Assembly: GCA_030704615.1 (NCBI GenBank)
Contig: CM060732.1
Span: 42,594,001-42,658,000 of the forward strand
DNA: 64,000 bases
From: Takakia lepidozioides
Lineage: Eukaryota > Plantae > Bryophyta
Direction: 5' to 3'
Of the stretch, positions 4,816 through 53,732 are shown piece by piece. The notes beneath the pieces were generated by a model. That model saw only the letters and a list, made by a program, of their open reading frames with translations, was not told where the DNA came from and did no database searches. The translations under genes were made by a program, and so were the position numbers. Position 1 is the stretch's first letter. Each line of letters opens with the position of its first letter.

Positions 4816-4817
4816 GC

Positions 4818-15893: not shown

Positions 15894-16251
15894 TGATAAG
15901 AAAGCTAAAAGGACACACACACTCCCAACACAAGAAATATGAAATCCATCGCTATCACTCTTTAAAACAGAAGTCGAGCCAGGGGCACCCCAAGCTGTGG
16001 GGACTCCACCCCACAACAACCTACACTCCCATCATGAGCACACTCAGTCCTAAACGATGCAGGAGCTCGGTCGCGCAGGCTCAACTCGAGAGAGATGAGC
16101 TGCGCGACTGCCGCTCTCGTGAAGATAAGACAGACCAGGTGTCAAAACTAAACTTGACACCTGATTTAACACTTGACCTAAATCCAAGTGTTAAATACAA
16201 ATAACTAGTTTTATTCTAGCTGTTTTCACACTGTGCTTATTTAACTTGACA
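15894..16251 (-). repeat. 5' LTR (repeat X) of Gypsy A
   Basis: TG...CA bounded. 16050-16251 matches 4616-4815 except for two 1-bp indels. Confidence 0.9.
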
Positions 16252-21835: not shown

Positions 21836-24800
21836 TGTCGCGCACCTCACTTCGGTAAGCTCCCCTTCAAGTCATGGTTACTCGCTTTGATGCGCGCGCC
21901 CAACTCCCAACCTGGCCGTCGGGCCAACCTGGAGCTTCGGCTGCTCACCGGGACATAACGGTCCCCCTTTACTCTTCCGACAAACCCTCCACCGATTTGG
22001 GCCCAGTGGAAATTCCCTTTAGTAGATGGCAATCCGGAATAGCTCCCCACTCTTTGGTCGCTTTCCGGCTCGCTCGCTTACTCACTAGTTTTTGGTCACC
22101 AACGGGCTTGCACCGTTCTCGGGGTTACTACTCCCTATATATACTTCTGTACTGTCCCGGGGGGTTTCACAAACAACCATGCCATTTTATGGCGAACCAC
22201 CACGAAGACCCTCGATTCCCGGTGGTGAGTCGCGGTGAGTCTTGGCCCACCCACCACGGCCCCATTGGACCATGATGAGTCCCAAAACTCCCCACGACTC
22301 CCACCACGAGATCTCCACCCCATGGTGAGTCCTATGCCACCCCCACTAAGTCCCGCTAAGCTACTACCACCCCCTGTGGAGCCACCCCCACTGCAACCCG
22401 GTCCCACCTAGTGAGCGCCTCCGCCTCCTTGAGTGCCTTGGGCACTCAAGGGTGCTTCAGCCCCCCGTACCTATTGCTGCCACTGCCCCCACCACAGGGG
22501 CAGCCCTCTTGTGTCCCGACCCCCCCCCCCTCAAGGCAAAGGGCCGCGACACACACCCCTACCAACAAGGAGTCGATGTCCTCATCAACTTGTCCATTTT
22601 GTAGAAACAAACATCCAAGTTGTGGCGTCCCACATCAAGGAGTTTGTTTCCGTACCATGGCGTCCCATGGCAAAGAACCAAACCCCACACTTGACTCTAC
22701 TCTCCACTAGCTAGTTCGGCCGACTTCCTCAGTCTCGGCCAAGGTTGGAGCCTCTCAAGCTCCTCCCAGTGCACTCTTCTTTTACTTCAAGGCCAAGGAA
22801 CGATCCTCCCCGAGGATCGAATCGCCTGACTGCAACAACATTGCTTGCAATCGCTCATGATGCCGCTTTTGGCATCACCTTGCGCAAGGGTTCACCTCGA
22901 ACCCCCTTTGACTAGGAAGATAACCTTGAACCAACCGTGCGCCCCAATCACTACAATTGGGTCCGTCTTGGAATGCTGGCCTGAGGTACGGGAACACGCC
23001 GAAGCCGCACTACGACTTCGTCCCGAGGCTACACGATTATAGTACGTGAACGGAAGCACGTAGCTTCCGCGTTAGCCCGCACTACAAGACAACCCTCGGT
23101 AGCGCAGTTATAGTACGCGCACGCGCAGGTGCGCACTAGCACGTGAACTCCCAAAGAAGGCGCAAGTTTCCTTGCCCCTTGGATAGGAGTCACCCGATTT
23201 CGGCACTACGCAAACACACGATTAACCCAATTTACCTCTCCCACTTTTGTAAGCTAGCATGCATTCTACACACTAGCCAACCATACCATGCATCACCATT
23301 CCAAACAAAATAGGACGCACAACATTTGGAAACCATTTCCCTTTATAACAAATTTTGTACGATACAAGTTTTTGCAATCGGATTCCTGAGCTAGCTAAGC
23401 CGGGCTAAGCATGCATTTCCTCCCCCACGCTCCAAGGTTGATGTCCCCATCAACGTTTCTTCCGCTTTTGAGGTCGCCTTCGAAAACTACAACGCCTCGG
23501 ATGCGTTTCCCATTTATGAGGCACGCACCCAAGATGCCTCCACATGATGATAGCCCTTCCATTTGACGAGATACTCCGTTTCTCGGTTTTTGAACCTCCT
23601 CGACTTAAGTACTGCTCCACCTCGTACTCAGGTTCATTTTCATGATCCAACAGCACAGGTGGCGGACGCAACACTTGATGCCGATTCGGACGCGCTTCAT
23701 CTTTGAAGTAAGGCTTCAAAAGGGAGACGTGGAATACTGGATGCACCTTGCTGTTTGCCGGCAGCTCCAATTCATACACATCCTCATTCATAACCTTCGG
23801 GTGCGAAAGGGTCCCGCATACGGAGGTACGAACTTGGACTCACTTCCGGAGGTAGTCGGAAATTCTTGATGTTCAAGCAGACCTCCGTGCCTGCCTTAAA
23901 CTTCACTTCCCTCCGCTTCCGATTCGCCTGCCTTTCATACCGTTTCCTAGCTTTGGCAATGTTGTACTTTGCGAGCTTCAACAAACACTCGCGTTCTTCC
24001 AGTACCGCCGCTACTGCTGGTTCCTCAACGTCCTAGGCGGCCCTTGTCGGCACCAGAGGTGCTTTTCCATAGACCAATACGAAAGGGGAAACTCCCGTTG
24101 CGGAGTGTTCTGTGTTATTATAACAGAACTCTGCCGCGTCTAAGTGTTCCACCCAGTCTGATTGGTCTGCCGACACGTAATTCCGCAAAATTGCTTCACT
24201 ACGGAATTCACTCTTTCCGTTTGGCCGTCGTCGTAGGTGGAAGGCGGTGCTCATCTTCAGCCTCGTCCCATCTTCTTCCAAAGTGCCCTCCAGAATTTAC
24301 TCGTAAACTTTGGATCGCGGTCCGAGACAATATCCTTCAGGACTCCATGATGCTTTAAGACGTGGGCGAAGTAAAGTCGCCCTGTCTCCTGTGCCGTTGC
24401 CGTCTCCTTGGTGGGGATGAAATGGCCCATTTTACTGAACCTATCCACCACCACCATGATTGCATCGAATCCTTTTGACAGCGGCATAGCAGTCATGAAA
24501 TCCATCGAGACGCTTTCCCAAGTCCCTGGAATCGGCAAGGGTTGTAACAGCCCGCTTGCTTTTTGTACTCGCTCCGGTTTTGTTGGCATGTGGTGCATGT
24601 CTTGACATACTCCTCTGCCCTCCCTCAGTTTGGGCCAGAAAATACTTTCTTCAAGAGTGCCGCAGTGCGCTTGGCTCCGCCGTGGCCCGCAAGTGGGCTA
24701 TCATGGCATTCTCTCAAGAGACTATCTCTGATCCCTCCCTTCGGCACGTAGAGACGCTTTTGCTTATACCGGAGCAGTCCATTTGCAAGTGGAACTGCGA

Positions 24801-27800
24801 TTTAACCCCCATCCTCAAGTCCTGCATCACGGACTTTGCCAGCTCATCCTTCCGGCAAGTTCCGGATCTTCCTTTGGAGCGTCGTCTCGCCTTGTACACC
24901 AACAGAGCTGTTGCTTTCTACTTAAAGCATCGGCCACCACATTGTCTCGTCCCGGTTTGTACTGGATATCCACGTCGAACACCGCCAAAGTATCTTGCCA
25001 CCTAAATTGTTTTGGGGACAACTTGGGTTGCGTGGCAAAATACTTCACCGTGACATTGTCCGTGAACACCTTTACTCGGTTGGAACCAACATAGTGGGCC
25101 AAAGCTCAAGGCAATGCACCACCGCCTTCATCTCTTTTTCGTGCGTCGGCCACCGTCGCTCCACTTCATTCAGTTTCTTACTTTCGTAAGCCACTGGACG
25201 TCCATCTTGCATAAGTACACCCCAATCGCGAAGTCCGACGCATCTGTATGATCTCAAACGGACGATCGAACTCCGGGATTTTCAAGACTGGAGCTTCCGC
25301 CATCCGCTGCTTCAATTCAGCAAAAGCTTGGCCACAAAAGGTGTTCCATACCCAGACTTTGGATTTACACAGAAGGTCCGACAACGGCCCCGCGATCTTG
25401 GCGAAATTTCTCACATACTTCCGGTAATAGGAGGCGAGTCCTTGGAAGGATCGCACTCCCGGGACCGAAGTCGGAGGTTCCCAGTCCAAGATCGCCCTCA
25501 CCTTTCTGTCATCCATTTTGATCCCATCCTGTGTAATCACATGCCCAGGAACTCCACTTTTGTGACCCCGAATTCACACTTTGAAGCTTTGGCATACAGC
25601 TTCCTTCCCGCAATTTTGGAACACCCTTTTGAGGTGCTCCAGGTGCTCCTCCTTTGTTTTTGAGTACACCAAGATGTCGTCGATGTACACGATCACAAAG
25701 TCATCCAACCACTCCTGAAAAAGGCTGTTCATCAGCGTGCTAAAGGTCGCGGGTGCATTGGTCAGCCCAAAAGGCATCACCAAGAACTCATATGAACCAT
25801 ACCTTGTCTGCACGGTCTTCTCCTCATCTCCTTCCGCCACCCGAATTTGATGATAGCCGGAGCGCAAGTCGATCCGGCTGAAATACTTCGCTCCTGCCAA
25901 CCGGTCGAAAAAGGTCGTCGATCCTTGGCAAAGGGTACCGGTTTTTTAGTCACCTTATTCAGAGCCCTGTAATCGACACACATCCGCAGCGTCCCATCCT
26001 TCTTGTCTGCGAATAGCACGGGGCTCCGTAAGGTGACTTACTCGGCCGGATGTACCCTTTGACATTAGATTTGAGTTGAGTCTTCAGCTTGACCAACTCT
26101 CTGTGGCTCAACCGGTAGGGCGCCTTGGCAGGCGGTTCCGATCCCGGTATCACCTCAATCTTGCGGTCAACTCCTTTGCGCGGTGGCAAGCCGCTTGGTA
26201 AATCCTCCGGCATCACATCCTGGTATTTCTCCAAAATCCCCTTGATCCAATCTGGGCTCGGCTCCCCATCGCCTTCTCCCTTCACTTCTCTAATGTAAAG
26301 CAAAAACTGGGGCTCGTGTGCCTCCTCCACGGCCCACTCCTTGCTGACATAAGGTTTATTCGCCCTCCCACGGGTTTGGGCGTTTCGACACTCGTAAGAC
26401 CTCGCCACCATTCCCACATGGCAGTGACTACTCTCTTGCGGCCATCTATGACCGCTCCGATTTGCTCAAAAAGGTCATCCCCAAAATGAGATCCACTCCA
26501 TCGATCTCGCAGATGGTGAAGTTCTCACGTCCCTCCCAACTCCCCAGTTGAAGAGGAACATCGAATGCCAACCTTGTCGCCACTTGTGGTTCTCCTTTGG
26601 CATAACGCACCTTAATAGAGGCCCCCACGTCGCTTGTCGGGAGTCCCAACTTTTGCGCCGCCGCCGGCGTCATGAAGGAGTGCGACGCTCTTGTGTCCAC
26701 CAACAACGACACGTTAGTTCCGGATATTATCCCATTCACGAACAATAACTGACTCCCTTACGCAGGGCGCCAGTTTCCTGATACAACTCACAAGAATAGT
26801 TGTCTACCTTGCAAGTCCTGGCGGCCACCGCTTCCACCAAGCGACTGATGGTATCTTCCGACAGCTCCGTGGTTGCCCGAGTCATGTTCAATTGTCGAGG
26901 TTTCGTGAACTTCTTGGCCATGTGCCCGGGCTCCCCGCAATTGAAACACACTCCATCAAAGGTCGCCTTCTGTCCGCCACAAGCCGCTCCACCCGCTTTT
27001 CTTTTCAAAGCACCGGGTGCCGCCTTGACGTGTGAAGGCCCTCCCTTCAATTTCCACGTGCCATTGTCGCCGCGTGGTCTATCCCACTTCTTTTCCGGTC
27101 GGAAGGAGTCACCTTCCCGCCGGGTCTTCTTGTGGTTCAGCTCCGTACGGCCTTGTCTTTCACCCTAGGGACATCCGAGAAACATTCAGCCCCTCAATTG
27201 CCTCGTTCAAAGTCTTAGGTGGCTTCTCCTCCAACTTCCGCCTGGCCCATGGTACCAATCCCGCCACAAAGTTGAAGACCATTTCTGGTTCTGCCATGTC
27301 CGCGACTTCGAGCAACAGCACATTGAAAGCCTGGACATATCCCTGAATGTCATCTGTTTGCTTCAAATTCCTCATCTTGTCCCGGGCAAGCCAGGACGCG
27401 TTAAGGGGCACAAACTGTCTCTTCATCAATTCCTTGAACCCACTCCAGTTCAAGGTTTCCGGGCTTGGACCTCGGTCGTGAAGGCGTTTCTACCACCATT
27501 GTTGAGCATAGCCCCTCAAATAGGTGGGAGCCACTTCCACCTGATCCTCGTCACTCAACTTGGCCGCCCGGAAGTACTGCTCTAGCTCCAAGAGCCAGGT
27601 GTTGAGTGCCTTCCGATTTTGGACGCCCTCGAAGGTGCCAGGTTCCTTAGGCTTCACCTTAAACTTTGCCTTAGTGGAAGTGGCATTAGCCGCCTTCAAT
27701 ACGTCTTTCAACGTCCCGCCAAACTGCGCCAACAACCCTTCCCAAAAGGCTGCCGGCATGAGAGGCATCTGTTGGTTGGTCGGAGCTCTTAGGGATTCCT

Positions 27801-28725
27801 CGGGCTCCGACTCCTCAGATTCCTCCCGCTCTTGAGCGGCCTTGTTTTCGGAAACATGCATCGCTTCCTCAAACGGCCGCCTCGGTGACACGTCGCCCCC
27901 ATCGGGCTCACTAGGATCAACATCTTTCGGGCCGTTCCGCTTTCGCTTTGGCTTGCCCGACCCCATGATGAGGCCAATCTCAAGGACGATCGCGTACTGA
28001 ACACTAAGCTCTGATACCAAGTGTTGCGCACCTCACTTCGGTAAGCTCCCCTTCAAGTGATGGTTACTCGCTTTGATGCGCGCGCCCAACTCCCAACCTG
28101 GCCGTCAGGCCAACCTGGAGCTTCGGCTGCTCACCGGGACATAACGGTCCCCCTTTACTCTTCCACCGATTTGGGCCCAGTGGAAATTCCCTTTAGTAGA
28201 TGGCAATCCGGAAAAGCTCCCCACTCTTTGGTCGCTTTCCAGCTCGCTCGCTTACTCACTAGTTTTTGGTCACCAACGGGCTTGCACCGTTCTCGGGGTT
28301 ACTACTCCCTATATATACTTCTGTGACTGTCCGCGGGGGTTTCACAAACAACCATGCCATTTTATGGCGAACCACCACGAAGACCCTCGATTCCCGGTGG
28401 TGAGTCGCGGTGAGTCTTGGCCCACCCACCACGGCCCCCTTGGACCGTGATGAGTCCCAAGACTCCCCACGACTCCCACCACGAGATCTCCAACCCATGG
28501 TGAGTCCTATGCCACCCCCACTAAGTCCCGCTAAGCTACCACCACCCCTTGTGGAGCCACCCCCACCGCAACCCGGTCCACCTAGTGAGCGCCTCCGCCT
28601 CCTTGAGTGCCTTGGGCACTCAAGGGTGCTTCAGCCCCCCGTACCTATCGCTGCCACTGCCCCCACCACAGGGGCAGCCCCTCTTGTGTCCCGACCCCCT
28701 GCCCTCAAGGCAAAGGGCCGCGACA
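21836..28725 (-). mobile_element. Full-length chromovirus Ty3/Gypsy retrotransposon C1
   Basis: LTRs 21836-22551 and 28022-28725 (TG...CA); TSD CGGGG on both sides; PBS TGGTATCAGAGC (tRNA-iMet) at 28008-28019. Confidence 0.96.
23450..27966 (-). pseudogene. Gag-pol with chromodomain of C1 (frameshifted)
   Basis: YAQQWW gag, CFNCGEPGHM, LLVDT(R)ASH, YIDD, SMDF...SDRDPKF, VHPVFHVSLLK, EYEVE chromodomain start. Confidence 0.93.
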
Positions 28726-29730
28726 CGGGGGGGTCAAGCCGAAAACTGGCCGACATAAAAACCTCCCTGGATGGAAAAACGACGCCGAATTTCCATTCGG
28801 GGCCGTTCGGATGCAGTCGGCTCGGGGGGAGTGGCCGGCACCTGGCCGTCACATTACAAACCCCGGACGGAAATTCGGCACCGAATATCCAAACAGGGTT
28901 GCCCGGTTGAAGTCGCCTCAGGCGGAGAGGCCGGCACCTGTCCAACAGAGAACATCCCCCGGATGGAAATTCAGCGCCGAATTTCCATTCGGGGCCCCCC
29001 AAAGGAAGTCGTGTCAGGGGGTCTGGCCGAAAACTCACCGACATAAAAACCTCCCTGGATGGAAAAACAGCGCCGAATTTTCCATCCGGGGCCGTTCGGA
29101 TGCAGTCGGCTCGGGGGGAGTGGCCGGCACCGGGCCGTCACATTACTACCCCCGGATGGAAATTCGGCACCGAATATCCAACAGGGTCGCCCGGTTGAAG
29201 TCGCCTCGGGCGGAGAGGCCGGCACCTGTCCGACAGAGAACATCCCCCGGATGGAAATTCAGCGCCGAATTTCCATCCGGGGGCCCCCCAAAGGAAGTCG
29301 TGTCAGGGGGTCAGGCCGAAAACTGGCCGACATAAAAACCTCCCCGGATGGAAAAACGGCGCCGAATTTCCATCCGGGGCCGTTCGGATGCAGTCGGCTC
29401 GGGGGGAGTGGCCGGCACCTGGCCGTCACATTATAACCCCCGGACGGAAATTCGGCACCGAATATCCAACAGGGGCCGCCCGGTTGAAGTCGCCTCGGGC
29501 GGAGAGGCCGGCACCTGTCCGACAGAGAACATCCCCCGGATGGAAATTCGGCACCGAATTTCCATCCGGGCCCCCCAAAGGAAGTCGTGTCGGGGGGTCA
29601 GGTCGAAAACAGTCCGACATCAAAACCTCCCCGGATGGAAAAACGGCGCCGAATTTCCACCTGGGGCCGTTCGGATGCAGTTGGCTCGCGGGGAGTGGCC
29701 GGCACCTGGCCGTCACATTACAACCCAGGG
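28726..29730. repeat. ~288-bp tandem repeat array, right part
   Basis: Same unit as 21170-21835; about 3.5 units. Confidence 0.9.
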
Positions 29731-37706: not shown

Positions 37707-38600
37707 GTTAGAGCCTTTGCAATGGCGCTAAATCCCTTAACAAACCGTCTATAATAGTTTGCTAACCCCATGAAAGCTCGAACTCGCTCACATCCATGGG
37801 GCGTGGAATCTGTGCAATGGACTCTACCTTAGTCTGTTGTACCCCCAATCCTCCAGGATATATCATGTGACCCAGATACTCAATCTGGTTGTGGAAAAAC
37901 TTGCACTTTCCCGGATGTAACTGCAATCCGTGCGCCCTCAAGCGCTCAAATACCACCTGAAGGTGTCTCTCATGCTCCTCCACGTAAGCACTAAAAATGA
38001 TGATGTCATCTATGTAGCACCGAGCAAACTCCACCCCTGCTAGAATCCTGTCCATGACTCTTTGAAACTCTGCAGGAGCGTTTTTAAGCCCAAATGGTAA
38101 GAACCGCCACTGGTATAGGCAATCCTTCCCGTGCTCATTGATCCCCCAGAATGTCGTCTTCTGCTTATCCGCCTCCTTGATCGGCAACTGGTGATATCCG
38201 GATCGTAAATCCAAAGTGCTAAAGACCTTGGCATGCCCAATGGCATCAAAGATCTCCTCTGGTGTTGGCATAGCATACCTATCGGAGTTGGTCTGACGAT
38301 TTATAGGCCGGTAATCACCGCACATACGTCTCTCCGTCCAATTGCCATAGACATCCTTCTTGGCTCGCATCACTGTGGCTGAAGCATACTCCCCCCAGCT
38401 CCACCAAACCAGCCTCCCAAAGGTCCTGAGTTCTCATCTGAATCAAGGACCTCTCCATGTCATTGTATCTATAGGGTCTCCGAAAGATTGGCGTGTCAGT
38501 AGCCAATTCAATGCGAATCTCTTGACCCTTCAGTGCTCCTAAGTCCTTCAAACTGAAGGCAAAGCAGTTCCTGTAAGCCCTCAAGAACCGCCGTATACGA
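37707..38600 (-). pseudogene. RT of Gypsy B (truncated)
   Basis: RMCGDYRPIN...LDLRSGYHQ...LPFGLKNAP...CYIDD. Confidence 0.93.
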
Positions 38601-39357
38601 CGTCTCTCTCCTCCGGTGACTATAGGTCCAACATCAGGCTCCCAGTTGTCCTCCGTGACTGCAACCTTGAGTCCAGCAGGCTTAGAGGTAGAAGACGCGT
38701 CCCGTGGTTGTTATGCTGCAACCTCTTGAGCAGTGACCACTGCCTCCTCTATCAGTGACAATGTCTCACCCTGCCCTATCATCCCATCCTTGACGTTCTA
38801 AAGTTTTTGGATTTCATGAGGGGAAGGTGCTGAGAAAGAAGAGGAATATGCCAAGGTGCACTCTCAATCCAATGGTATTCTGGTGTAGTTAGTCAACCCG
38901 AGAAAAATCCCCAACCTGATCCATCACCGCCGCTTTGGCTGCCAACTCATTCTGAACCTCGATCACCTCCCCCGTGTGCCATGGATGCGGCCTGCACCTC
39001 GTGGTCCTCACCTGCTCGCCCCCACTCGCTGCCTGTACCATCTCGGTAGGCAAGGAGATCATGAAAGGAAGTGTACTCCGTACTCTGCGTTGCTCAGTCA
39101 TAGCCAAGCTGATAATCCAGGTCAAAGGAATTGAGATCCATTGCTTGCCCCAACACCTGACGACGTGATGCCTCAGAAAGAGATGGCACCGCCGTGGTAC
39201 CACTGGTAAAACCCATCGCCCGCTCGCGCTCGTTAGCATTGGGCTCCACTAATTGTTGCAACTGGCTATCCCACAAGAGGCCAGGTCCATCATCTCGAAA
39301 AGCATGGGATCCTGGGAAGCTGAGCAGTGTAGGTAATGCTGCTCGTGGTTGACCCAC

Positions 39358-42300
39358 TGTCGCGGCCCTTTGCCTTGAGGGCAGGGGGTCGGGACACATG
39401 AGGGGCTGCCCCTGTGGTGGGGGCAGTGGCAGCGATAGGTACGGGGGGCTGAAGCACCCTTGAGTGCCCAAGCACTCAAGGAGGGGAGGTGCTCACTAGG
39501 TGGAGCCCCGCACACCGGGTGCGGTGGGGGTGGCTCACAAAAGGGGTGGTGGTAGCTTAGCGGGACTTAGTGGGGGTGGCATAGGACTCACCTGGGGCGG
39601 AGACCTCGTGGTGGGAGTCGTGGGGAGTCTTGGGACTCATCACGGTCCATAGGGGCCGTGGTGGGTGGGCCAAGACTCACCGCGACTCATCACCGGGAGT
39701 CGAGGGTTTTCGTGGTGGTTCGCCATAAATGGCATGGTTGTTTGTGAAACCCCCGCGGACAGCTACAGAAGTATATATAGGGAGTAGTAACCCCGAGAAC
39801 GGTGCAAGCCCGTTGGTGACCAAAAACTAGTGAGTAAGCGAGCGAGCCGGAAAGCGACCAAAGTGGGGAGCTGTTCCGGACTGCCAACTACCAAAGGGAA
39901 TTCCCGCTGGCCCAAATCGGTGGAGGGTTCTTTGGGAGATCAAAGGGGGACCGTTATGCCCCGGTGAGCAGCCGAAGCTCCAAGTTGGCCCGGCGGCCAG
40001 GTTGGGAGTTAGGCGCGCGCATCAAAGCGAGTAACTATGACTTGAAGGGGAGCTTACCGAAGTGAGGTGCGCGACACTTGGTATCAGAGCTTAGAGTTCA
40101 GTACGCGATCGTCCTTGGGATTGGCCTCATCATGGGGTCGGGCAAGCCAAAGCGAAAGCGGAACGCCCAAAAGATGATGATCCTGGTGAGCCCGATGGGG
40201 GCGACGTGTCACCGAGGCGGCCGTTTGAGGAAGCGATGCATGTTTCCAAAACGAGGCCGCTCAAGAGCGGGAGGAATCCGAGGAGTCGGAGCCCGAGGAA
40301 TCCTGAGAGCTCCGACCGACCAACAGATGCCTCCCATGCCGGCAGCCTTTTTGGGAAGGGTTGTTGGCGCAGTTTGGCGGGACGTTGAAAGACGTGTTGA
40401 AGGCGGCTAATGCCACTTCCACTAAGGCAAAGTTTAAGGTGAAGCCTAAGGAACCCGCACCTTCGAGGGCGTCCGAAATCGGAAGGCACTCAACACCTGG
40501 CTCTGGAGCTAGAGCAGTACTTCCGGGCGCCAAGTTGAGTGACGAGGATCGGGTGGAAGTGGCTCCCACCTATTTGAGGGGCTATGCTCAACAATGGTGG
40601 CAGAAACGCCTTCACGACCGAGGTCCAAGCCCGGAAACCTTGAACTGGAGTGGGTTCAAGGAATTGATGAAGAGACAGTTTGTGCCCCTCAACGCGTCCT
40701 GGCTTGCCCGGGACAAGATGAGGAATTTGAAGCAAACAGATGACATTCGGGGATATGTCCAGGCTTTCAATGTGCTTTTGCTCGAAGTCGCGGACATGGC
40801 AGAACCAGAAATGGTCTTCAACTTTGTGGCGGGACTGGCCCCATGGGCCAGGCGGAAGTTGGAGGAGAAGCCACCTAAGACTTTGAACGAGGCAATTGAG
40901 AGGGCTGAATGTTTCTCAGATGTCCCTAGGGGTGAAAGACAAGGCCGTACGGAGCTGAACCACAAGAAGACCCGGCGGGAAGGTGACTCCTTCCGACCGG
41001 AAAAGAAGTGGGATAGGCCACGGCGACAATGGCACGTGGAAATCGAAGGGAGGGCCTTCACAAGTCAAGGCGGCACCCGGTGCTTCGAAAGGAAAAGCGG
41101 GTGGAGCGGCTATGGCGGACAGAAGGCGACCTTTGATGGAGTGTGTTTCAATTGCGGGAGCCCGGGCACATGGCCAAGAAGTGCACGAAGCCCCGGCAAT
41201 TGAACATGACTCGGGCGACCACGGAGCTGTCGGAAGATACCATCAGTCGCTTGGTGGAAGCGGTGGTCGCCAGGACTTGCAAGGTAGGCAAATTTCTTGT
41301 GAGTTGTATCAGGAAACTGGCGCCTTACGTAAAGGGAGTCAGTTATTGTTCGTGGATGGGATAATATCCGGAACTAACGTGTCGTTGTTGGTGGACACAG
41401 GAGCGTCGCACTCCTTCATGACACCGCAACGGCACAAAAGCTGGACTCCCGACAAGTGACGTGGGGCCTCTATTGAGGTGCGTTCTGCCAAAGGAGAACC
41501 ACAATTGGCGACAAGGTTGGCGTTTGATGTTCCTCTTCAACTGGGGAGTTGGGAGGGACGTGAGAACTTCACCATCTGCGAGATCGATGGAGTGGATCTC
41601 ATTTTGGGGATGACTTTTTTGAGCAAATCCGGAGCGGTCATAGATGGCCGCAAGAGAGTAGTCACGCTGCCATGTGGGAATGGTGGCGAGGTCTTACGAG
41701 TGTCGGAAACGCCCAAACCCGTGGGAGGGCGAATAAACCTTCTGTCAGCAAGGGAGTGGGCCGTGGAGGAGGCACACGAGCCCCAGTTTTTGCTCTACAT
41801 TAGAGAAGTGAAGGGAGAAGGCGATGGGGAGCCGAGCCCAGATTGGATCAAGGGGATTTTGGAGAAATACCAGGATGTGATGCCGGAGGATTTACCAAGC
41901 GGTTTGCCACCGCGAAGAGGAGTTGACCACAAGATTGAGGTGATACCGGGATCGGAACCGCCTGCCAAGGCGCCCTACCGGTTGAGCCACAGAGAGTTGG
42001 TCGAGCTGAAGACTCAGCTCAAAGATCTAATGTCAAAGGGGTACATCCGGCCGAGTAAGTCACCTTACGGAGCCCCGGTGCTATTTGCAGACAAAAGGAT
42101 GGGACGCTGCGGATGTGTGTCGATTACAGGGCTCTGAATAAGGTGACTATCAAAAACCGGTACCCTTTGCCAAGGATCGACGACCTCTTCGATCGAGGAG
42201 CGAAGTATTTCAGCCGGATCGACTTGCGCTCCGGCTATCATCAAATTCGGGTGGCGGAAGGAGATGAGGAGAAGACCGCGTGCAGGACAAGGTATGGTTC

Positions 42301-45300
42301 ATATGAGTTCTTGGTGATGCCTTTTGGGCTCACCAATGCACCAGCGACATTTAGCACGCTGATGAACAGCCTTTTTCAGGAGTGGTTGGATGACTTTGTG
42401 ATCGTGTACATCGACGACATCTTGGTGTACTCGAAAACAAAAGGAGGAGCACCTGGAGCACCTGAAAAGGGTGTTCCAAAAATTGCGAGAAGGGAAGCTG
42501 TATGCCAAAGCTTCAAAGTGCGAATTCGGGTCACAAAAGTGGAGTTCCTGGGGCATGTGATTACACAGGATGGGATCAAATGGATGACAGGAAGGTGAGG
42601 GCAATCTTGGACTGGGAGCCTCCGACTTCGGTCCCGGGAGTGCGATCCTTCCTAGGACTCGCCTCCTATTACCGGAAGTATGTGAGAAATTTCGCCAAGA
42701 TCGCGGGGCCGCTGTCAGACCTTCTGTGTAAATCCAAAGTCTGGGCATGGAACACTTTTTGTGGCCAAGCTTTTGCTGAATTGAAGCAGCGGATGGCGGA
42801 AGCTCCAGTCTTGAAAATCCCGGAGTTCGATCGTCCGTTCGAGATACATACAGATGCGTCGGACTTCGCGATTGGGGGTGTACTTATGCAAGATGGACGT
42901 CCAGTGGCTTACGAAAGTAAGAAACTGAATGAAGTGGAGCGACGGTGGCCGACGCACGAAAAAGAGATGAAGGCGGTGGTGCATTGCCTTGAGCTTTGGC
43001 GCCACTATGTTGGTTCCAACCCAGTGAAAGGTGTTCACGGACAATGTCACGGTGAAGTATTTTGCCACGCAGCCCAAGTTGTCCCCAAAACAACTTAGGT
43101 GGCAAGATACTTTGGCGGTGTTCGACGTGGATATCCAGTACAAACCGGGACGAGACAATGTGGTGGCCGATGCTTTAAGTAGAAAGCAGCAGCTCTGTTG
43201 GTGTACAAGGGCGAGACGGCGCTCCAAAGGAAGATCCGGAAGGCTTGCCGGAAGGATGAGCTGGCGAAGTCCGTGATGCAGGACTTGAGGATGGGGGTTA
43301 AATCGCAGTTCCACTTGCAAAATGGACTGCTCCGGTATAAGCAAAAGCGTCTCTACGTGCCGAAGGGAGGGATCAGAGATAGCTCTTGAGAGAATGCCAT
43401 GATAGCCCGCTTGCGGGCCACGGCGGAGCCAAGCGCACTGCGGCACTCTTGAAGAAAGAGTATTTCTGGCCCAAACTGAGGGAGGAGGCAGAGGAGTATG
43501 TCAAGACATGCACCACATGCCAACAAAACCGGAGCGAGTACAAAAAGCAAGCGGGGCTGTTACAACCCTTGCCGATTCCAGAGGGACTTGGGAAAGCGTC
43601 TCGATGGATTTCATGACTGCTGCCGCTGTCAAAAGGATTCGATGCAATCATGGTGGTGGTGGATAGGTTCAGTAAAATGGGCCATTTCATCCCCACCAAG
43701 GAGACGGCAACGGCGCAGGAGACAGGGCGACTTTACTTCGCCCACGTCTTAAAGCATCATGGAGTCCCGAAGGATATTGTCTCGGACCGCGATCCAAAGT
43801 TTACGAGTAAATTTTGGAGGGCACTTTGGAAGAAGATGGGGACGAGGCTGAAGATGAGCACCGCCTTCCGACCTACGACCGACGGCCAAACGGAAAGAGT
43901 GAATTCCGTAGTGAAGCAGATCTTGCGGAATTACGTGTCGGCAGACCAATCAGACTGGGTGGAACACTTAGACGCGGCAGAGTTCTGTTATAATAACACA
44001 GAACACTCCGCAACGGGAGTTTCCCCTTTCGTATTGGTCTATGGAAAAGCACCTCTGGTGCCGACAAGTTGGGCCGCCCAGGACGTTGAGGAACCGGCAG
44101 TAGCGGCGGTACTGGAAGAACGCGAGCGTTTGTTGAAGCTCGCAAAGTACAACATTGCCAAAGCTAGGAAACGGTATGAAAGGCAGGCGAATCGGAAGCG
44201 GAGGGAAGTGAAGTTTGAGGCAGGCACGGAGGTCTGGTTGAACATCAAGAATTTCCGACTACCTCCGGAAGTGAGTCCAAGTTCGTACCTCCGTATGCGG
44301 GACCCTTTCGCATCCGGAAGGTTATGAATGAGGATGTGTATGAATTGGAGCTGCCGGCAAACAGCAAGGTGCATCCAGTATTCCACGTCTCCCTTTTGAA
44401 GCCTTACTTCAAAGATGAAGCGCGTCCGAATCGGCATCAAGTGTTGCGTCCGCCACCTGTGCTGTTGGATCATGAAAATGAACCTGAGTACGAGGTGGAG
44501 GCAGTACTTAAGTCGAGGAGGTTCAAGAACCGAGAAACGGAGTATCTCGTCAAATGGAAGGGCTATCATCATGTGGAGGCATCTTGGGTGCGTGCCTCAG
44601 AAATGGGAAACGCATCCGAGGCGGTTGCAGTTTTCGAAGGGCGACCTCAAAAGCGGAAGAAACGTTGATGGGGACATCAACCTTGGAGCGTGGGGGAGGA
44701 AATGCATGCTTAGCCCGGCTTAGCTAGCTCAGGAATCCGATTGCAAAAACTTGTATTGTACAAAATTTGTTATAAAGGAAATGGTTTCCAAATGTTGTGC
44801 GTCCTATTTTGTTGGAATGGTGATGCATGGTATGGTTGGCTAGTGTGTAGAATGCATGCTAGCTTACAAAAGTGGGAGAGGTAAATTGGGTTAATCGTGT
44901 GTTTGCGTAGTGCCGAAATCGGGTGACTCCCATCCAAGGGGCAAGGAAACTTGCGCCTTCTTTGGGAGTTCACGTGCTAGTGCGCACCTGCGCGTGCGCG
45001 TACTATAACTGCGCTACCGAGGGGTTGCCTTGTAGTGCGGGCTAACGCGGAAGCTACGTGCTTCCGTTCACGTACTATAATCGTGTAGCCTCGGGACGAA
45101 GTCGTAGTGCGGCTTCGGCGTGTTCCCGTACCTCAGGCCAGCATTCCAAGGCGGACCCAATTGTAGTGATTGGGGCGCACGGTTGGTTCAAGGTTATCTT
45201 CCTAGTCAAAGGGGTTCGAGGTGAACCCTTGCTCAAGGTGATGCCAAAAGCGGCATCATGAGCGATCGCAAGCAATGTTGTTGCAGTAAGGCGATTCGAT

Positions 45301-46290
45301 CCTCGGGGAGGATCGTTCCTTGGCCTTGAAGTAGGCCAAGAAGAGTGCACTGGGAGGAGCTTGAGAGGCTCCACCCTGGCCGGGACTTGGAGGAAGTCGG
45401 CCGAACTAGCTAGTGGAGAGTAGAGTCAAGTGTGGGGTTTGGTTCTTTGCCATGGGACGCCATGGTACGGAAACAAACTCCTTGATGTGGGACGCCACAA
45501 CTTGGATGTTCGTTTCTACAAAATGGACAAGTCGATGAGGACATCGACTCCCTGTTGGTAGGGGTGTGTGTCGCGGCCCTTTGCCTTGAGGGCAGGGGGT
45601 CGGGACACATGAGGGGCTGCCCCTGTGGTGGGGGCAGTGGCAGCGATAGGTATGGGGGGCTGAAGCACCCTTGAGTGCCCAAGGCACTCAAGGAGGCGGA
45701 GGCGCTCACTAGGTGGAGCCCCGCACACCGGGTTGCGGTGGGGGTGGCTCACAAAAGGGGTGGTGGTAGCTTAGCGGGACTTAGTGGGGTGGCATAGGAC
45801 TCACCTTGGGCGGAGACCTCGTGGTGGGAGTCGTGGGGAGTCTTGGGACTCATCACGGTCCATAGGGGCCGTGGTGGTGGGCCAAGACTCACCGCGACTC
45901 ATCACCGGGAGTCGAGGGTTTTCGTGGTGGTTCGCCATAAAATGGCATGGTTGTTTGTGAAACCCCCGCGGACAGCTACAGAAGTATATATAGGGAGTAG
46001 TAACCCCGAGAACGGTGCAAGCCCGTTGGTGACCAAAAACTAGTGAGTAAGCGAGCGAGCCGGAAAGCGACCAAAGAGTGGGGAGCTGTTCCGGACTGCC
46101 AACTACCAAAGGGAATTCCGCTGGCCCAAATCGGTGGAGGGTTCTTTGGGAGATCAAAGGGGGACCGTTATGCCCCGGTGAGCAGCCGAAGCTCCAAGTT
46201 GGCCCGGCGGCCAGGTTGGGAGTTAGGCGCGCGCATCAAAGCGAGTAACTATGACTTGAAGGGGAGCTTACCGAAGTGAGATGCGCGACA
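39358..46290 (+). mobile_element. Full-length chromovirus Ty3/Gypsy retrotransposon C2 (same family as C1)
   Basis: LTRs 39358-40076 and 45569-46290; TSD CCCAC on both sides (the empty site GACCCACCCTG is seen in copy A); PBS TGGTATCAGAGC at 40079-40090. Confidence 0.97.
40132..44668 (+). pseudogene. Gag-pol with chromodomain of C2 (frameshifted)
   Basis: LLVDTGASHSF; YIDD; HTDASD RNase H; HDSPLAGH...CTTC; EYEVEAVL...EYLVKWKGY...SWV chromodomain. Confidence 0.94.
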
Positions 46291-46295
46291 CCCAC

Positions 46296-47010
46296 CCTGT
46301 TGACCACTGCCAAAGGCGAACGGTCATCGTGTCTCACACGTTGAGACTACCTCCTTGTGTCCAAAATGCTATCCACTGTGAGGTGTGCTGGCCGCTGCAC
46401 CCCATCAAATGCACATTTGAGCAGTGCGGGTGGCATCAAGTTAGTCCACCATAGCCGTGGACGATGAGCCCGTGACCCCACTGTTAGCTGGCACCAGCAA
46501 CACTGCTGCCAGCAACACTGCTGACCCAAGCCACGACCGGACTTGATGCACACTGGCCATCACCCTGGCCCGAGAATCACCCATCAGTGGCACATCTCCA
46601 AGATGTATGCTGGAGATACAGCTTGATGAGCTGCAAGTGGCGCAAAACCCGCACCATCTCCCAAATTAGACCCGTCCTCGAGTCTCGCAATCCATTGCCA
46701 TGCCCGGCTGATGAATGCCCTTGGCAGGGCCAACCTGCCATTACCAGATCTGTGGAGCCAACCTACTCCAATCCTTCGCCCCCAGCAACGAAATGTCTGC
46801 TGGCAAGGCTTGTTGGTATCCAGGAACTGCAGACACTAGCAATAAATCAGGGTACTGCTGTATCAACTGAGCAACATGGCGTAGTGAGACGCGTCATGCA
46901 GTCTCATCCCTTCCCACATACAGGTAATGTCGAACTCGTACACCTGCCTGCAGCACTACAGCCAATCCAGTGCTGATCCCGCCAAACAAGTCCAGAAGGC
47001 ATATGCCTTC
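46296..47010 (-). pseudogene. N-terminal part of the DNMT3-like domain of Gypsy B (C-terminal part at 39110-39357)
   Basis: Homologous to 8840-9540, including the GWPCQGHS and HRPRLWWTN motifs. Confidence 0.88.
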
Positions 47011-47499
47011 ATCCGGGCACTACCACACAAGAGGTGTGGTATCCAATGGCGACAACTGAGGTGTCCTGTGCATCACCCGCACTCTCCTCTTCTCCTGACG
47101 GTACGAATGCCTCTACCCAGGCTTGTTGCACCCGTCCATTAGCAGCCTGCTGCAAATCCTTGCTCGTACCCCACAATGGAGTGTGAGCAACCATGGCAGA
47201 CAACTCCACCGTACCATGCATGTCATCCTGCTCTGCTGAAGGTGGCACATCCTCTACATGGGCATTGCCTTCCAGCAACTCTCCAGGCCAACTAACTGCA
47301 GTTGTAAAGGCGGCTAGTGTTGGCATCTTGCCCCGCTGGGCAGCCGCAATACCCCCAATGAATGTCACAGGGAGCCGTGCACGACGACCATCCCCTGACT
47401 GCCATCCAGGCCTGTTGGATGCTGACTCCTCCCAAAAGTCCAGGGTGAAGCCCATGGGATATAACACTGCCCCACCAACAAGGACATCGTAAGAGACCG

Positions 47500-49943
47500 C
47501 GTTTGTCACAATGGCCTTGGCTCGCATCACTGAGCCATCTATAGGATGATCCGGCTGGCCAACTTACGCCGTGTCATGCCCCGAACCTGCTCTAATCCTC
47601 CCAGAGATGTTTGTATCTGGAAAGGACAAGGCTCCATATCCGCCTCCATGAGGCCCAAACCTGCAATAGCAGCTCTGCCCAACATCAGTGGCTGAGCTCC
47701 CAAGTCCAACAAGACTCGCAGTGGCCGGTACTTCTTGCCTGCCGGTCCACTCAAAGAGAAAATGCCATCCTGGTTGTCTAACAAGACAACTTCAGGTGTC
47801 ACCATGGCGCGCTCAAAGGCTGGCCTAGCTGTCAGCTCCGTCAACCTGGCAGCTGCAGCTTGCCATGGCGCAGCCGTGGCAGTCTTGACCCTCAAATCCG
47901 AGGATCCCTCTGCCACTACAACTTCCAGTAACTCCGCAGAAGATGAAGTGACCTCCCCACTCTCACACAGTGTTGCTGCTAATCTGAACACTGCAGCTGG
48001 TCTTACCCCCGACGTCACAATTATGGTTGCCGAGAACAGCGGGGCTTGACACACAGAGGTGGCTGCCCCCAATAACACACCGGCTGCACTAGCCTTGGTA
48101 GCAGGTGTCAGTGATGCACATGTAGCTCTCCCCAATGGCATAGTAACCTCCGCCTCGGTAACAGTCGGGCGAGAACTAGGTGCCATGGATGGCGTCGACA
48201 CTGTCTCCGCCAATGTGAATGACTGAGGAAGCCTCGCCTGATGGCTTGCCTCCCCACACTGTGGATCCAATTCCACCTCTGCACCTCATGGCTCAGGAAT
48301 ACGTGCTGCTCTTCGAATCACGGCTGCAGCAGACTCCACCTACTCTAGTGGTAGTGCTGCTCCGCACATGAATCCCATGCCTCCCATATCTCCTCCCTCA
48401 GGAGCAAGAGGTGGACCATCCCGCCTGGGAGCCGGTACCACCTGAGCTGTAGCCATGGCAGCGAGCCTCTGCTCTAGCTGATGAAGCCGGTTGGCCATGC
48501 CTTGGTCAACACCCTGACCTCCGCGTCCTTGGCCATGTTGAGCTTGCCCTTGGCCTGCACCTCGTGCCCGGCCACCTCGTCCTCTCTGGGCTGGTCCACC
48601 TCACCCCCGGCCACCATTGTTCCCTTGGAACTGGTCTTGGAACTGGTCTGGGCGCAACTCAGGATGCAATTCATAACACTGGACATCTCCATGCCCATAC
48701 TTGCCACAATGCCCACACTGCAACTGTGCAGGCTGTGCTTGTGCCGGCCTTTTGCCACTCTCTGGGCAATCTCTCTTGACATGGGGTCCTCCACATGTCC
48801 AACATATCACCCCTGGTTGCTGTTGGCTTGCAAAAGATGCTATTGGCCTCTGCACCTGAGGTCCCCTGTAAGCTCCATGAAATTTGGGTTGGGAAACCTT
48901 GCCCCCCTGACCACGCTGTTGGGCAGTCCCTTGTGCCTGTGGGCTGGCAGCTGCGCCTCGTGCAGGCATGTCTTTGCCAAATCCAATGGTAACAACTCGC
49001 TCCTCCACCATGTTGAGCTCAATCCGCTCAGCCAGCAGAAACACATCTGTAATGTGGGTTGGGCTGCTTGTAACAGGGTTGCATCCCGCACCCTTCTCCT
49101 GAGCTCATTGTCCAAAATTCCATACCAGAACTGGATTGCCTGAGCTTCAGTAACCCCTTGGGTCACACTTATCAAGCGCCTCATACGAGTGTACGCCTCT
49201 CGCAGGCTCTCACTGGGTTTGCGCTGGAAGTCTTGCAAACTTCACAGCTTCTCTGTCCGTACACCTTGGTAGTTCTTCCACAACTCCTAGAAGAACTCCA
49301 CCACCGGGCTGAATCTAGGCACATGTGTTGTAGTCGTGGGATGATAAGTAGTAGGACCTTTTGCAGAAGTACCGGCACTACTTGTTTCACTACTAGTGCT
49401 AGCCGTGGGAGGTATTGGTGTTGATGCCGTTACTGGTCGCGTTGTTCCTCGAGTAATGGAGACGTATTCAGGTGACCAATACATCCTCTACTCTTCAATT
49501 TTTGCTTCATGTCCTCGCCTGAACTCGTGGTAATCATCCATAGGCGGACCTTCCAAATGCTGGAACAATCCCTTCCACGCCATGAATGGGGTGAACAGCT
49601 GTGGATTGCGCATCTGCTGCAAATCACACCAGCTGTCAAACTCCTAGATAAAGTCATCCAGCTCGATTGTGCCCACAGCTCCAGAGTACCTATGAGGCCC
49701 CTTGGTAGCTCCATACATCTCCTCCATGTCGTCCCACAACAATGGCGAAGAAAACTGCATGCTTGTTGATGAAGCCTCCGGGTCTGTGTCAGACTCTACA
49801 GTAGTTGAGGGTGGAGGTGAAGGTGGTCTGAACCGAATACCTCGTCTTGTGAACCCACTCTCACTGTTACTGCCTGTAGCCGTACTCCCCTCAAAACCCT
49901 TGGGTAACTCCATGATGACACTCACAATGTGCACCTCCCCCAC
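47500..49943 (-). pseudogene. Gag and protease of Gypsy B
   Basis: Homologous to A; CWTCGGPHVKRDC, CGHCGKYGHGDVQC; protease motif LLDLGA. Confidence 0.85.
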
Positions 49944-50463
49944 GTAACACTATAAGGCTCTAGTACTAATTCTAATAGTGACATGGGTGGGCACCTGTTG
50001 CAGTTTAAGGGTCATATCCCAGTGGCTCAGGGCACCTGCACCTGCATCCACCGCAAGAACTCCTATGGTTGGCTGGTCATCAACCCAGTCTCACCATAGA
50101 AGAAACACTGGTGGTCTTGCTGGTCATCACTCCAGCCTCACCACCGACAGCATACTCTAGGATTGATCGGTGATTAAACCCGGCCTAATCCCTATGAAAG
50201 CAAGCGCCCACACAAAACCAACATGGCGCACAGTTAAGCATGCAGATGTTGGGGGGGATCCAAACACAAGAAATCAAAACATCAACACCCCCACACCAAA
50301 ATCCATCTGTAATGCTGATCCTGCAGAATATCCCAGCCCAAAACCCCGGACTGACTGGCCTCCACCAAGAGAGGCTTTGGCAACTACAAGTACAAAGTAA
50401 TGAAAATAGTAAAGAGAGGGAGGGGAAGAATAGAAGCCCGACCAAGCAAGATCTAATCCTGAT

Positions 50464-51212
50464 CTATGCTATCAACTGCCAGACTTCTCTCAAAGTGCCT
50501 CGCTTTGCATGATGGTAAGGTGTAGGAGGTATATCTATGTCCAAAAACCTGCCACTAACCTTGTCCCAAGCTACAGTAGCTCGCTCTAACCAACCCTCCT
50601 CCTCTTTCTGCCAGGTAGAGACAAAGCAATACTCCCCTATCTCCCGCTCACTGAACACTAAAGAAAATAAAGGTAGGGTCTGACAGTCTCTCAACTCGAA
50701 GCTTGAGACGGTTGCGGGTGTCCTCATTGCGAATGACTGCATCTCCTTCAAGCAGAACAAATTTTTCATTGCTAATGAACCCCCGCTCGTGGTTGCCCCA
50801 TGTAGAACGTGTCCGGCTGCAACCATGTCTGATTGCACAAACTTGTGTAGCTCTTGCTCCTCTGCTCCAGTACACCACGGCCTTATGGCTGAACACCTTG
50901 GTCCCCGGGGCTGTCTTTGGTTGTGTTCCAAGCCTAGCTTTCACCCACCTTGGTATTTTCACATACAGCTGCAGAACTGCTGGCTCCAACAGAGTTCTGA
51001 CTGTCCAAAGCAATATTGAGGCCCTCAACGCCAACTACAGCAGTTTGTTGTCTACTGCTAATGCCTGACTCCCAGTATGCAATCAACTCGTCCAACTGCT
51101 CTCCATTCAAATCAGTCTGAGTTCCTTGGGAAACATAAATCTTGTCCCTTTGTGTGCACAGGCTAAGAGAAGAGACCTGCCCTTCAATTACGTCCTCATT
51201 TCCCCCAGCCAT
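50464..51212 (-). CDS. ORF0 of Gypsy B (unknown function)
   Basis: MAGGNEDVIEGQ...LERATVAWDKVSGRFLDID, conserved with copy A. Confidence 0.7.
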
Positions 51213-51742
51213 ACAAGGAGGACATCCACAAATTTGTCTCTCATGTAGACCACAACAGGTTCTAGAAACATAATTGTGGATCTTTCATAGCACACTCACA
51301 CTCAAAAAATTCCATAGATTTTTAGCAGAGTCAAAAAAAACTAAAACCAGGTCTAGATAGGTAGATTTCCCCTTTCTGTAGGTCCCTGCGCAAGTTTTGG
51401 GTCAAACGGCCTTGGTAGGCCAAAGTTATGGCCAAACAGGCTCTATCTAATTTAAATTAGATCAAAGAACGAATTTCTTTAATTTTTCACACCCAAAACG
51501 TTCTCGCCATTAAAAATTGTTTCCACGTTTTTTGCGATTCACTGCAGGTTCCCATCACATTCAAAATACCGTGCCCTGTGAGTGCCCGAAATGGTGGAAT
51601 TGAAGTCTACCAACAGAGGTTGCTGTGCAAGGATCCTCCTTTGTAGGCACACGCTTGGCAGCTGCTGCAGGTCCTGCACCCCGAGTCTGCCATGCCTCTG
51701 GCGTCAGGGCTGCTCTTTCACTCTCCAGCGGCTCGCTCCAGA

Positions 51743-51847
51743 AAAGGGATGGACCCTAAGTTCTTGAGGAATCAGAGATATGCCAAGAAACATAATTGTG
51801 TGGGCGGCGACAACAGTGAAGTTGATGCTGCTGAAGAAATGGAATGA
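51743..51847 (+). pseudogene. RPL29: Captured 3' fragment of 60S ribosomal protein eL29
   Basis: [18 protein letters not shown]...stop is the eL29 signature. Confidence 0.9.
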
Positions 51848-51874
51848 GAGATGTGTAGATGGAGCAATCGATGA

Positions 51875-53110
51875 GTGCCCAGGTTGCAGCGGGAGTCTCC
51901 TGCTTGTCTCTATGCAAGGTGGGGCACTGATGAAGGTCTACAGCTACGCTTTAAAACGTTTTCGATCTGCACTCCATCAGGCTCCTTGTTGGCAATCGAG
52001 GTACTGATTGCGGTCTATGTAGGTCAGATGCTGTCAAGAGGGCCTTTGAGCTGTTGCAAGTCTCCACTTGTGAAGGATCCTCAATGCGCTCAACTCATTC
52101 CTGATTGCGTTCTTCACCTCTTTCATGGGGATCCTACCATGTTCGAGTCCTACTGGCTGGCCCAGCCCCAGGCAACCACTGTAATCCCAGCGTGGCAAGG
52201 CATGAGCTATTTTGCTCACAAGCACAACGCCTTCCTATTTGTGGACCACCATTTGGACCAGACAATCCGCGCCTTTCACAGCTTTGTTGAGAATGCTGTC
52301 GCCGAGAGCCGCTACATTGTACTTGGAACTGGCTCGACACACTTGTTCCAAGCTTCAATTTACGCCCTATCCTCGCCCCAGTTGTCCACTCCAACGAGCA
52401 TCATCTCGGCTACCCCTTATTATTCGCCGTATCCAGACTTGACAGACTTCCTCAAATCCGGGGTATTCAAATGGGCAGGAGATGCACACCAGTTTCAACA
52501 GAACTCTTCGCAAGATGCTTATATTGAGATAGTGACACCACCCAATAATCCAGATGGAACCATCCGGCATGCTGTGGTCAATGGCAGTGGATCAATAGCT
52601 CATGATCTCGCCTACTACTGGCCACACTACACTCCAATCACCTCCGCTGCTGACTTTCCCGTGATGCTCTTCACTTTCTCCAAAATCACAGGCAATGCTA
52701 GCACTCGACTCGGTTGGGCGGTTGTGGAAGACGAGCGCGTTGCCATCAAATGGTGGAGTTTGTTCGATTGAACACACTCGGTGTATCCCAGGATGCACAA
52801 GCCCGGGCAACCACCTTACTCCGGACAATCATGACTGGCTACGCGCAACCGGTTGTCAAATACGGGGGACTGATGGACGCGGCGAAGCAGCCCTTCTTCC
52901 ATTATGGCCAGGCGGTGATGGAGGAGAGATGGAAGAAGCTGCAGCAGAAGTTGGAGGGCAGCACGCGCTTCGCTTTGCCTGATCATGACCCCTTACACTG
53001 TTCCTTCTTGGGAAAGATGTTTCGGCCCAACCCAGCTTTTGTATGGCTGCATTGTAAGGAGGAAGAAGACTGCCAAGAATTGCTTCGCCAACACCGCATT
53101 GTATCCCGTG
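51875..53110 (+). pseudogene. TAR: Captured intronless tryptophan aminotransferase-related (TAA1/TAR, alliinase family) retrocopy; frameshifted and 3'-truncated
   Basis: HGDPTMFESYW, IVLGTGST, PYYS, VTPPNNPDG, HDLAYYWPHYTPI, FTFSKITG (PLP lysine), PAFVWL; frameshift near 52750. Confidence 0.92.
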
Positions 53111-53382
53111 CAAACCCAGATTCCAGTGAGCTCAAGTCACCCTTCATTTCTTGATGGCATTGCTCCCCTCTGGCAGGCGCATAGATTATAAAGCTGCTAC
53201 ACCTGCTTACTCATCCCCTGCCTTCATTGCTTGCTGCATCAGTATTGATCCCCTGCACATCTTTCTAACTAATGATTACCTGAACACAGATAATCATTTC
53301 TCTCGCTTTCAAAACAAAAACCACAAGTGCTAAAACTAAACTCACCTCTGGCACTCACAGATGCAAGCTCATCTCTCTCGAG

Positions 53383-53732
53383 TGATAAGAAAGAACTAAA
53401 CTCAAATAACAAGAGAAACACAAAACACAACACCATCACTCTTTAAAATAATAGTCGAGCCAGGGGCACCCCAAGCTATGGGGACTCCACCCCACAACAA
53501 CCTATCCTCCCTTCATAAGCACACTCAGGTTCTGAACGGTGAAAGAGCTCGGTCGTGCAGGCTCAACTCGAGAGAGATGAGCCGCACGACTGACGTTCTT
53601 GTGAAAATAAGACGATTCAGGTGTCAAACTAAACTTGACACCTGACTTAACACTTGAACTAAATCCAAGTGTTAAATACAAATAACTAGCTTTATTCTAG
53701 TTAGTTTCACACTGTGTTTATTTAACTTGACA
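53383..53732 (-). repeat. 5' LTR (repeat X) of Gypsy B
   Basis: Homologous to 15894-16251; TG...CA. Confidence 0.9.

Follow-up and report, generated by a model that had tools for sequence, protein, structure and literature searches.

A mostly antisense mosaic of host transcript pieces at a fixed leader site of a Gypsy retrotransposon in Takakia lepidozioides

Two copies of a Gypsy-type retrotransposon in Takakia lepidozioides carry, at the same place in their leaders, entirely different sets of host gene pieces. In the copy studied here (copy B), the pieces are of RNA origin, form a mosaic of several genes, sit about 70 nt behind a site of apparently self-priming type, show what reads as neutral decay and belong to a copy that is dead. 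It is very probable that the element captured them as RNA. The window, by which we mean the whole stretch of 64,000 nucleotides that was analysed (contig CM060732.1, positions 42,594,001 to 42,658,000), is transposon-rich plant DNA; coordinates refer to it unless stated otherwise.

Copy A of the element (4389-16251, minus strand) encodes gag, protease, a C5 DNA methyltransferase (DNMT), reverse transcriptase (RT), RNase H, integrase and a PHD finger. The predicted methyltransferase domain (Pfam DNA_methylase, E 7e-11) is located between protease and RT, within the Gypsy polyprotein region, and by this domain order the element is a DNMT-carrying Gypsy. Copy B (37707-53732, minus strand) is frameshifted, split by a 6.9-kb LTR element and truncated after RT. 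The gag-pol region is kept downstream of the slot in both copies. The parts of copy B and the two slots are as follows.

37707-39348, minus strand: remaining DNMT and RT of copy B, cut at 37707; RNase H, integrase, PHD finger and 3' repeats are absent
39349-46293, plus strand: unrelated LTR element of tRNA-Met-primed type, inserted in the DNMT region of copy B; its LTRs are 98.2% identical and its target duplication is CCCAC
46294-49949, minus strand: gag, protease (DLG for DSG) and the beginning of the DNMT in copy B, all decayed; domain scores are those of copy A
50467-51284 (B) and 12965-13785 (A), minus strand: extra ORF ahead of gag, frameshifted, about 300 codons, common to A and B
51530-53297: variable cargo slot of copy B, 1768 nt, of which host-transcript pieces make up about 91%
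14029-15820: equivalent slot of copy A, about 1792 nt, with an eL6 N-terminus, a THI1 mid-part and other pieces on the plus strand
53298-53365, minus strand: element-derived stretch with a predicted hairpin, between primer-binding site (PBS) and slot (contig depth, contig edge, fold)
53366-53383, minus strand: PBS position, 17-18 nt complementary to 53566-53582, about 150 nt inside the repeat
53383-53732, minus strand: 5' terminal repeat A of copy B, TGTC start, TTATCA end, about 350 bp

The repeat layout of the element is A-internal-B-A-B, and the 3' A repeat of copy A lies between two copies of an 86-bp B repeat. Repeat A of copy B shares 85-92% identity with 15877-16251 and 4474-4815. Copy A lacks a target duplication. 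Its A repeats (4389-4903 and 15877-16251) are near-identical over their first 190 nt in element sense and clearly diverged beyond, and the copy is probably a recombinant of two elements. Element ends read TGTC...GACA, with 4-bp target duplications, and the integrase, we suggest, acts on the internal junction of a circular intermediate. The B/A internal junction reads GACA-GC-TGTC (L009:13255-13285; window 4800-4830), like a retroviral circle junction. The complementarity of the PBS to the repeat's own interior points to a self-priming type. None of the motifs tried gave a tRNA-primed PBS for the DNMT Gypsy, the tRNA-Met PBSs belonging to the nested family only. That family, also of Gypsy type, occurs at 21833-28737 and 39349-46293, in opposite orientation, with 95% identity and LTRs of about 720 bp, and the former copy sits within a 96-bp tandem array. 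The extra leader ORF has one homologue (P0305, 44%) and is unmatched in the Calypogeia relatives discussed below; Atlas assigns it, with a high score, to 2OG-Fe(II) oxygenase clusters, which may serve as a lead only.

The edges of the slot follow from comparison of the copies. A and B share 91% identity across 5.2 kb (8835-14028 versus 46290-51529); their similarity ends at 14028/51529 and resumes at 15877/53366. BLAST found no cargo common to the two slots, its best match being 17 nt long (E 0.07). The left edge recurs exactly in a third sequence, a contig of run X6 that has B-like leader up to 51529 and then the start of A's cargo. The right edge in B lies near 53297, since contig depth is high at 53288-53374 and a contig of another copy aligns only from 53298. 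A preliminary description made from the letters of the window alone had placed the slot at 51535-53325. Its claim that the slot has the same place and nearly the same length as in A with wholly different content stands; its right edge does not, 53298-53365 being element sequence. A separate nested element as the cargo was ruled out, termini and repeats being absent. A splice-donor-like AG/GTGAGT (53340-53350, minus strand) lies directly past the PBS in B and is absent from A, which does not make a clear case for the slot as an intron.

At least seven host pieces were recognised in the B slot by transcript-contig alignment. Their limits come from contigs of two runs, X6 and X7, whose RNA type is our guess.

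51593-51716, plus strand: transit-peptide-like 5' coding piece, from an abundant mRNA (contigs, translation)
51736-51849, plus strand: eL29/RPL29 3' coding end with stop codon (RNA contigs, PDB, Pfam)
51850-51866, no strand assigned: short host piece, left edge approximate (X7 loose end past 51866)
51880-51918, plus strand: 39-nt piece directly 3' of a start codon, from a gene whose N-terminus is transit-peptide-like (X6 loose ends, translation)
51939-52065, minus strand: inverted piece of 127 nt, about 535 nt upstream on the same TAA transcript contig
52078-53110, plus strand: intronless TAA/TAR retrocopy fragment, 1033 nt, with a 1-nt deletion at 52747
53103-53231, plus strand: piece of another transcript, probably mRNA-sense on this strand (contigs X6:23 and X7:30)
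53232-53262, no strand assigned: short host piece, left edge approximate (three RNA-type contigs diverge past 53262)

The slot had been described as holding pieces of two genes, an RPL29 fragment and a TAA/TAR copy, both antisense to the element. That count proved too low, and one of the pieces is inverted. The eL29 C-terminus with its stop codon on the plus strand is borne out by PDB (eL29, E 2e-8), by a Pfam L29e match and by the RNA contigs. The piece at 51593-51716 is presumably THI1, as its parent transcript runs on to ...YSDAKYDLN, in which we take YDLN to be the characteristic motif. For 53103-53231, a plus frame is open when the letters of the RNA contigs are used, and all minus frames contain stops. 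This piece and the TAA match overlap by no more than 8 nt (53103-53110), and other junctions have fillers of 12-20 nt without assignment, both figures being read from alignment ends and not from parent sequences. THI1 pieces may be present in both slots, from different parts of the gene, that in A (15653-15832) being recognised by Pfam Thi4; a ribosomal-protein piece lies close to the left edge in both. Abundant mRNAs may be captured repeatedly.

The antisense orientation holds for most of the cargo's length, and fails for the 127-nt piece of the TAA transcript, which is element-sense. In X6 contig 19, positions 480-606 align on the minus strand and 1141-1891 on the plus strand, and the joint of the inverted piece with TAA is also present in a DNA contig. 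The inverted piece has no match among moss TAR proteins. It is probably a 5' UTR or divergent N-terminus; it could come from the 5' part of TAA, or from a transcript of the opposite strand that overlaps TAA and was merged with it, the contig being unstranded. Over the identified pieces of A and B together, six of seven are antisense (p 0.125), or seven of eight (p 0.07). Antisense orientation is thus a bias, not a rule, and copies A and B alone do not establish it.

The largest piece, from the auxin-synthesis gene TAA/TAR, corresponds to residues 159-491 of the 525-residue Physcomitrium TAR, or 63% of a moss TAR. It contains about 90% of the Pfam catalytic domain and keeps the PLP-binding lysine motif SKITG; the N-terminal ~158 and C-terminal ~34 amino acids are missing. 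Pfam Alliinase_C matches it at E 2e-80 and 2e-27. The best protein matches are moss TARs (Physcomitrium and Ceratodon, 61%), and AtTAA1 (228 bits, E 1e-66) scores above alliinase (183 bits, 6e-53), which makes the cargo gene appear closer to TAA1/TAR than to alliinase. About 1.2 kb of uninterrupted, near-complete TAA/TAR sequence had been proposed. The match spans 1033 nt, and "near-complete" applies to the catalytic domain only. An uninterrupted frame is ruled out by the frameshift at 52747, a position at which two RNA-type runs carry one A more than the cargo copy, and no intact full-length frame exists, with both ends lacking as well.

Exact exon mapping in five genomic genes (Physcomitrium, Ceratodon, Selaginella, Aristolochia and Microthlaspi) revealed four TAA/TAR introns with the same positions and phases from mosses to angiosperms; the frameshift was bridged with an X for position mapping only. 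The cargo is uninterrupted at all four sites (52126, 52427, 52714 and 53036), which upholds the earlier reading of an intronless copy on the plus strand of a minus-strand element. Because all four conserved introns are absent, the source was a spliced mRNA. In two samples, DNA contigs set in at the intron-1 junction, at 52126 and 52128; a contig of single-copy depth aligns over just ~45 nt from 52078. These breaks fit an intron 1 in the TAA parent, introns 2-4 of the parent having left no direct trace.

A parent transcript for TAA was found separate from the cargo. It has an intact frame, with the extra A at 52747, and extends past both ends of the piece. Aligned with it, the copy is about 2.7% diverged and appears neutral. 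In a small and partial list of 14 differences, 5 are synonymous and 9 nonsynonymous, against 33% synonymous expected without selection. C>T and G>A changes exceed the reverse changes, 18 to 6 (p 0.02). By its substitutions, the TAA piece seems to decay neutrally, not under purifying selection. With its introns lost, no sequence in common with the cargo of A and its parent transcript found apart, the capture can be regarded, as first supposed, as separate from that in copy A.

The majority DNA contig carries the 52747 deletion, lacks six changes specific to B and has about four times the presumed single-copy depth. Contig depths over the TAA cargo are 180-540, compared with ~74 for contigs taken as single-copy parents, depth being a rough guide and not a copy number. 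Together with the common deletion, contig depth points to a small number of cargo copies that would derive from a single capture; it is depth, too, that speaks for a modest re-amplification afterwards. The preliminary description had supposed that such copies could inflate the annotated TAR family, and by contig depth they would number only a few. Within TAA, the depth of the DNA contigs climbs over 52853-53047 from 315 to about 540, hinting at more cargos or at a paralogue with that segment alone.

How might such a slot be filled? Lost introns, joined transcripts and overlaps or fillers at the joints are hallmarks of LTR-mediated retroposition (PMC5131818). We give about half of our belief to a non-functional mosaic of spliced mRNA pieces, built by template jumps of RT, mostly during plus-strand synthesis. 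The element's own RT would jump serially between co-packaged host mRNAs. After second-strand transfer, the plus strand would, we infer, extend past the PBS hairpin, slip onto co-packaged mRNAs and copy toward their 5' ends, yielding cargo antisense to the element, and would then rejoin the minus strand ahead of the leader ORF. A fold-back, or a jump onto cDNA, would account for the inverted piece. In retroviral mechanics, an mRNA copied during minus-strand synthesis ends up in sense orientation. The antisense bias, unlike what this usual minus-strand model gives, and the position of the slot just past the second-strand transfer point favor the plus-strand step. Reverse transcriptases can switch templates in vitro at overlaps of 2 nt, and also onto RNA; the enzyme of the self-priming element Tf1 is one of them (PMC3035444). 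The cargo begins ~70 nt past the PBS, not at it, which counts against the plus-strand model. Template jumping itself does not account for the constant slot length, which is unexplained except by selection on length; such selection would act on the spacer or on genome length, not on content.

Several other explanations bear on the same evidence. Capture by RT need not belong to plus-strand synthesis. Either orientation could enter, whether from mRNAs, antisense RNAs or loose cDNAs, with sense pieces lost later for disturbing the translation, splicing or packaging of element RNA. We regard this as possible, though on the doubtful side. It accommodates the inverted piece in B, and a filter against sense cargo has some basis in that host-sense cargo would give leader ORFs of 200-250 codons, compared with about 65 in the observed orientation. 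Yet about 30 ATGs remain on the observed element-sense strand, so that selection against upstream ATGs is a weak cause for the antisense bias; AATAAA occurs on neither strand, and spliced coding fragments contain no splice sites on which a filter could act. Filling at the DNA level, by break repair with cDNA pieces in a Pack-MULE-like manner and with insertion tolerated only here, is unlikely. The mosaic of short pieces, the fillers, the one inversion and the replacement at similar length do resemble gap repair, but 1 kb crossing four intron sites contains neither introns nor genomic flanks, repair predicts random orientation, and inverted termini and a target duplication are absent around the cargo. 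That the locus is the true host TAA gene, or was duplicated as DNA from a parent without introns, is extremely improbable. One DNA contig (52297-52827) runs unbroken over two intron sites, but it has the frameshift of the cargo copies, and assembler clean-up can hide a single-copy branch. Moreover, the RNA contigs are intact, ~2.7% different and longer at both ends, and the piece lies between fragments of other genes in a retrotransposon leader. The host-locus reading, which the preliminary description had named among those that would refute its own, is largely refuted.

A functional slot, in which antisense host sequence shields the element, since its silencing would also strike housekeeping genes, or small RNAs tune parents such as TAA, is quite unlikely. 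The site and length are fixed, in a very abundant family that codes for a PHD finger besides its DNMT; the Pxyfem antisense retrocopies of Plutella (PMC9674220) and siRNA cross-talk in maize (10.1101/777037) offer precedents. In addition, two low-depth, unstranded X6 contigs, from a run whose RNA type is a guess, bridge the leader and the first cargo piece. However, the content is fully replaced between copies, B is dead, the TAA piece appears neutral with a methylation-type spectrum, and none of the RNA contigs listed bridges a TAA junction, contigs being prone to drop rare RNAs. Capturing elements also gained no copy number in the maize study (10.1101/777037). We see no sign that the slot regulates auxin, and its TAA content looks incidental; the earlier suggestion that an antisense TAR RNA could affect auxin regulation is unsupported, the copy being dead and apparently neutral. 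Analogy with known cases leaves cross-talk with TAA possible. A dedicated, length-limited leader cassette, refilled with antisense mRNA as a regular plus-strand step in replication and blunting silencing or targeting TAA through small RNAs, has in our estimate only a small probability.

It is useful to set the slot beside known systems. Capture by Pack-MULEs and Helitrons is DNA-based and often keeps introns. The Takakia slot resembles Pack-MULEs, Helitrons and Sireviruses, whose captured fragments may cross-talk with donors through siRNAs (10.1101/777037), in being a multi-gene mosaic in a transposon; unlike in Pack-MULEs and Helitrons, its cargo is spliced and TIR or Helitron termini are absent. 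The closest comparison is LTR-mediated retroposition (Tan et al. 2016, who cite maize Bs1; PMC5131818), with which it shares a partial, intronless chimera of several mRNAs in an LTR element and, as alignment ends and contig depth suggest, overlaps or fillers and copying after capture. Indeed, the B slot lacks the conserved introns and is flanked by sequence of one LTR element. In the Drosophila cases, however, the retrocopy replaces part of the internal ORFs and is co-transcribed from the LTR, whereas the Takakia element keeps its ORFs and has cargo at one fixed leader site, of near-constant length, mostly antisense and different between copies. In Plutella, the antisense PxyMasc retrocopies called Pxyfem make silencing RNAs against their parent (PMC9674220). 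Our case is similar in that a spliced, partial, reverse-oriented gene copy is joined to LTR-element sequence, apparently in several copies; silencing RNAs against the parent are shown for Pxyfem, whereas here the material is sequence and unstranded contigs.

With regard to the element itself, KnitGypsy-Dnmt3 of Klebsormidium nitens (de Mendoza et al. 2018; PMC5890265) likewise combines a Gypsy polyprotein with a C5 DNA methyltransferase, there a DNMT3-like domain; searched by terms, the paper yielded neither captured cargo nor PHD. On the side of the differences stand self-priming, the A-internal-B-A-B layout and 4-bp target duplications, seen here in liverwort relatives. The Gypsy elements Tf1/Sushi and Tcn1 have a self-priming PBS (PMC6317226), complementary, as here, to a stretch inside the 5' repeat and not to a tRNA. 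Takakia differs from them in its 17-19 nt pairing, C-terminal PHD finger and permuted repeats, and is likened to them by features alone.

The capture of mRNAs by LTR elements is already known. A leader slot of fixed position and near-constant length with an antisense bias is, as far as we found, not described: a literature search, made largely without subscription papers, returned no report of an antisense leader slot. The slot is a clear example of a single fixed place in the leader where mRNA is captured. Such slots, in their hundreds to thousands, would form a natural data set on the capture step in reverse transcription and on the mRNAs that enter particles. For annotation, TAR-like sequences that lack introns can, in the Takakia genome, be cargo of a transposon. 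Were small RNAs from the slot shown to act on TAA or housekeeping genes, this would be a transposon strategy that ties its fate to host genes.

Finally, three relatives in the liverwort Calypogeia fissa have the A-internal-B-A-B layout and 4-bp target duplications, with a different 12-nt self-pairing at the same PBS place. Their A repeats are 99% identical throughout, unlike those of copy A. No swapped cargo was seen in these three copies, which have one leader in common, and Pfam scans of 20 leader segments of L009, L010 and L014 were blank, a screen that short or non-coding pieces would escape. Since these copies are self-priming without swapped cargo, self-priming alone is not the cause of the slot, and the slot behaviour may be limited to the lineage of the Takakia element. 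Klebsormidium proteins are among the integrase homologues. Two Calypogeia subfamilies (L010:2955-4733 and L011:4147-5652) have unrelated leaders of 1.5-1.8 kb and coding parts that are 85% identical; no host gene pieces were recognised in these leaders. A chlorophyll a/b-binding gene (L012:15386-16508) and a PsbP gene (L014:12278-12787), 1.7 kb past the 3' ends of two relatives, are probably neighbouring host genes.
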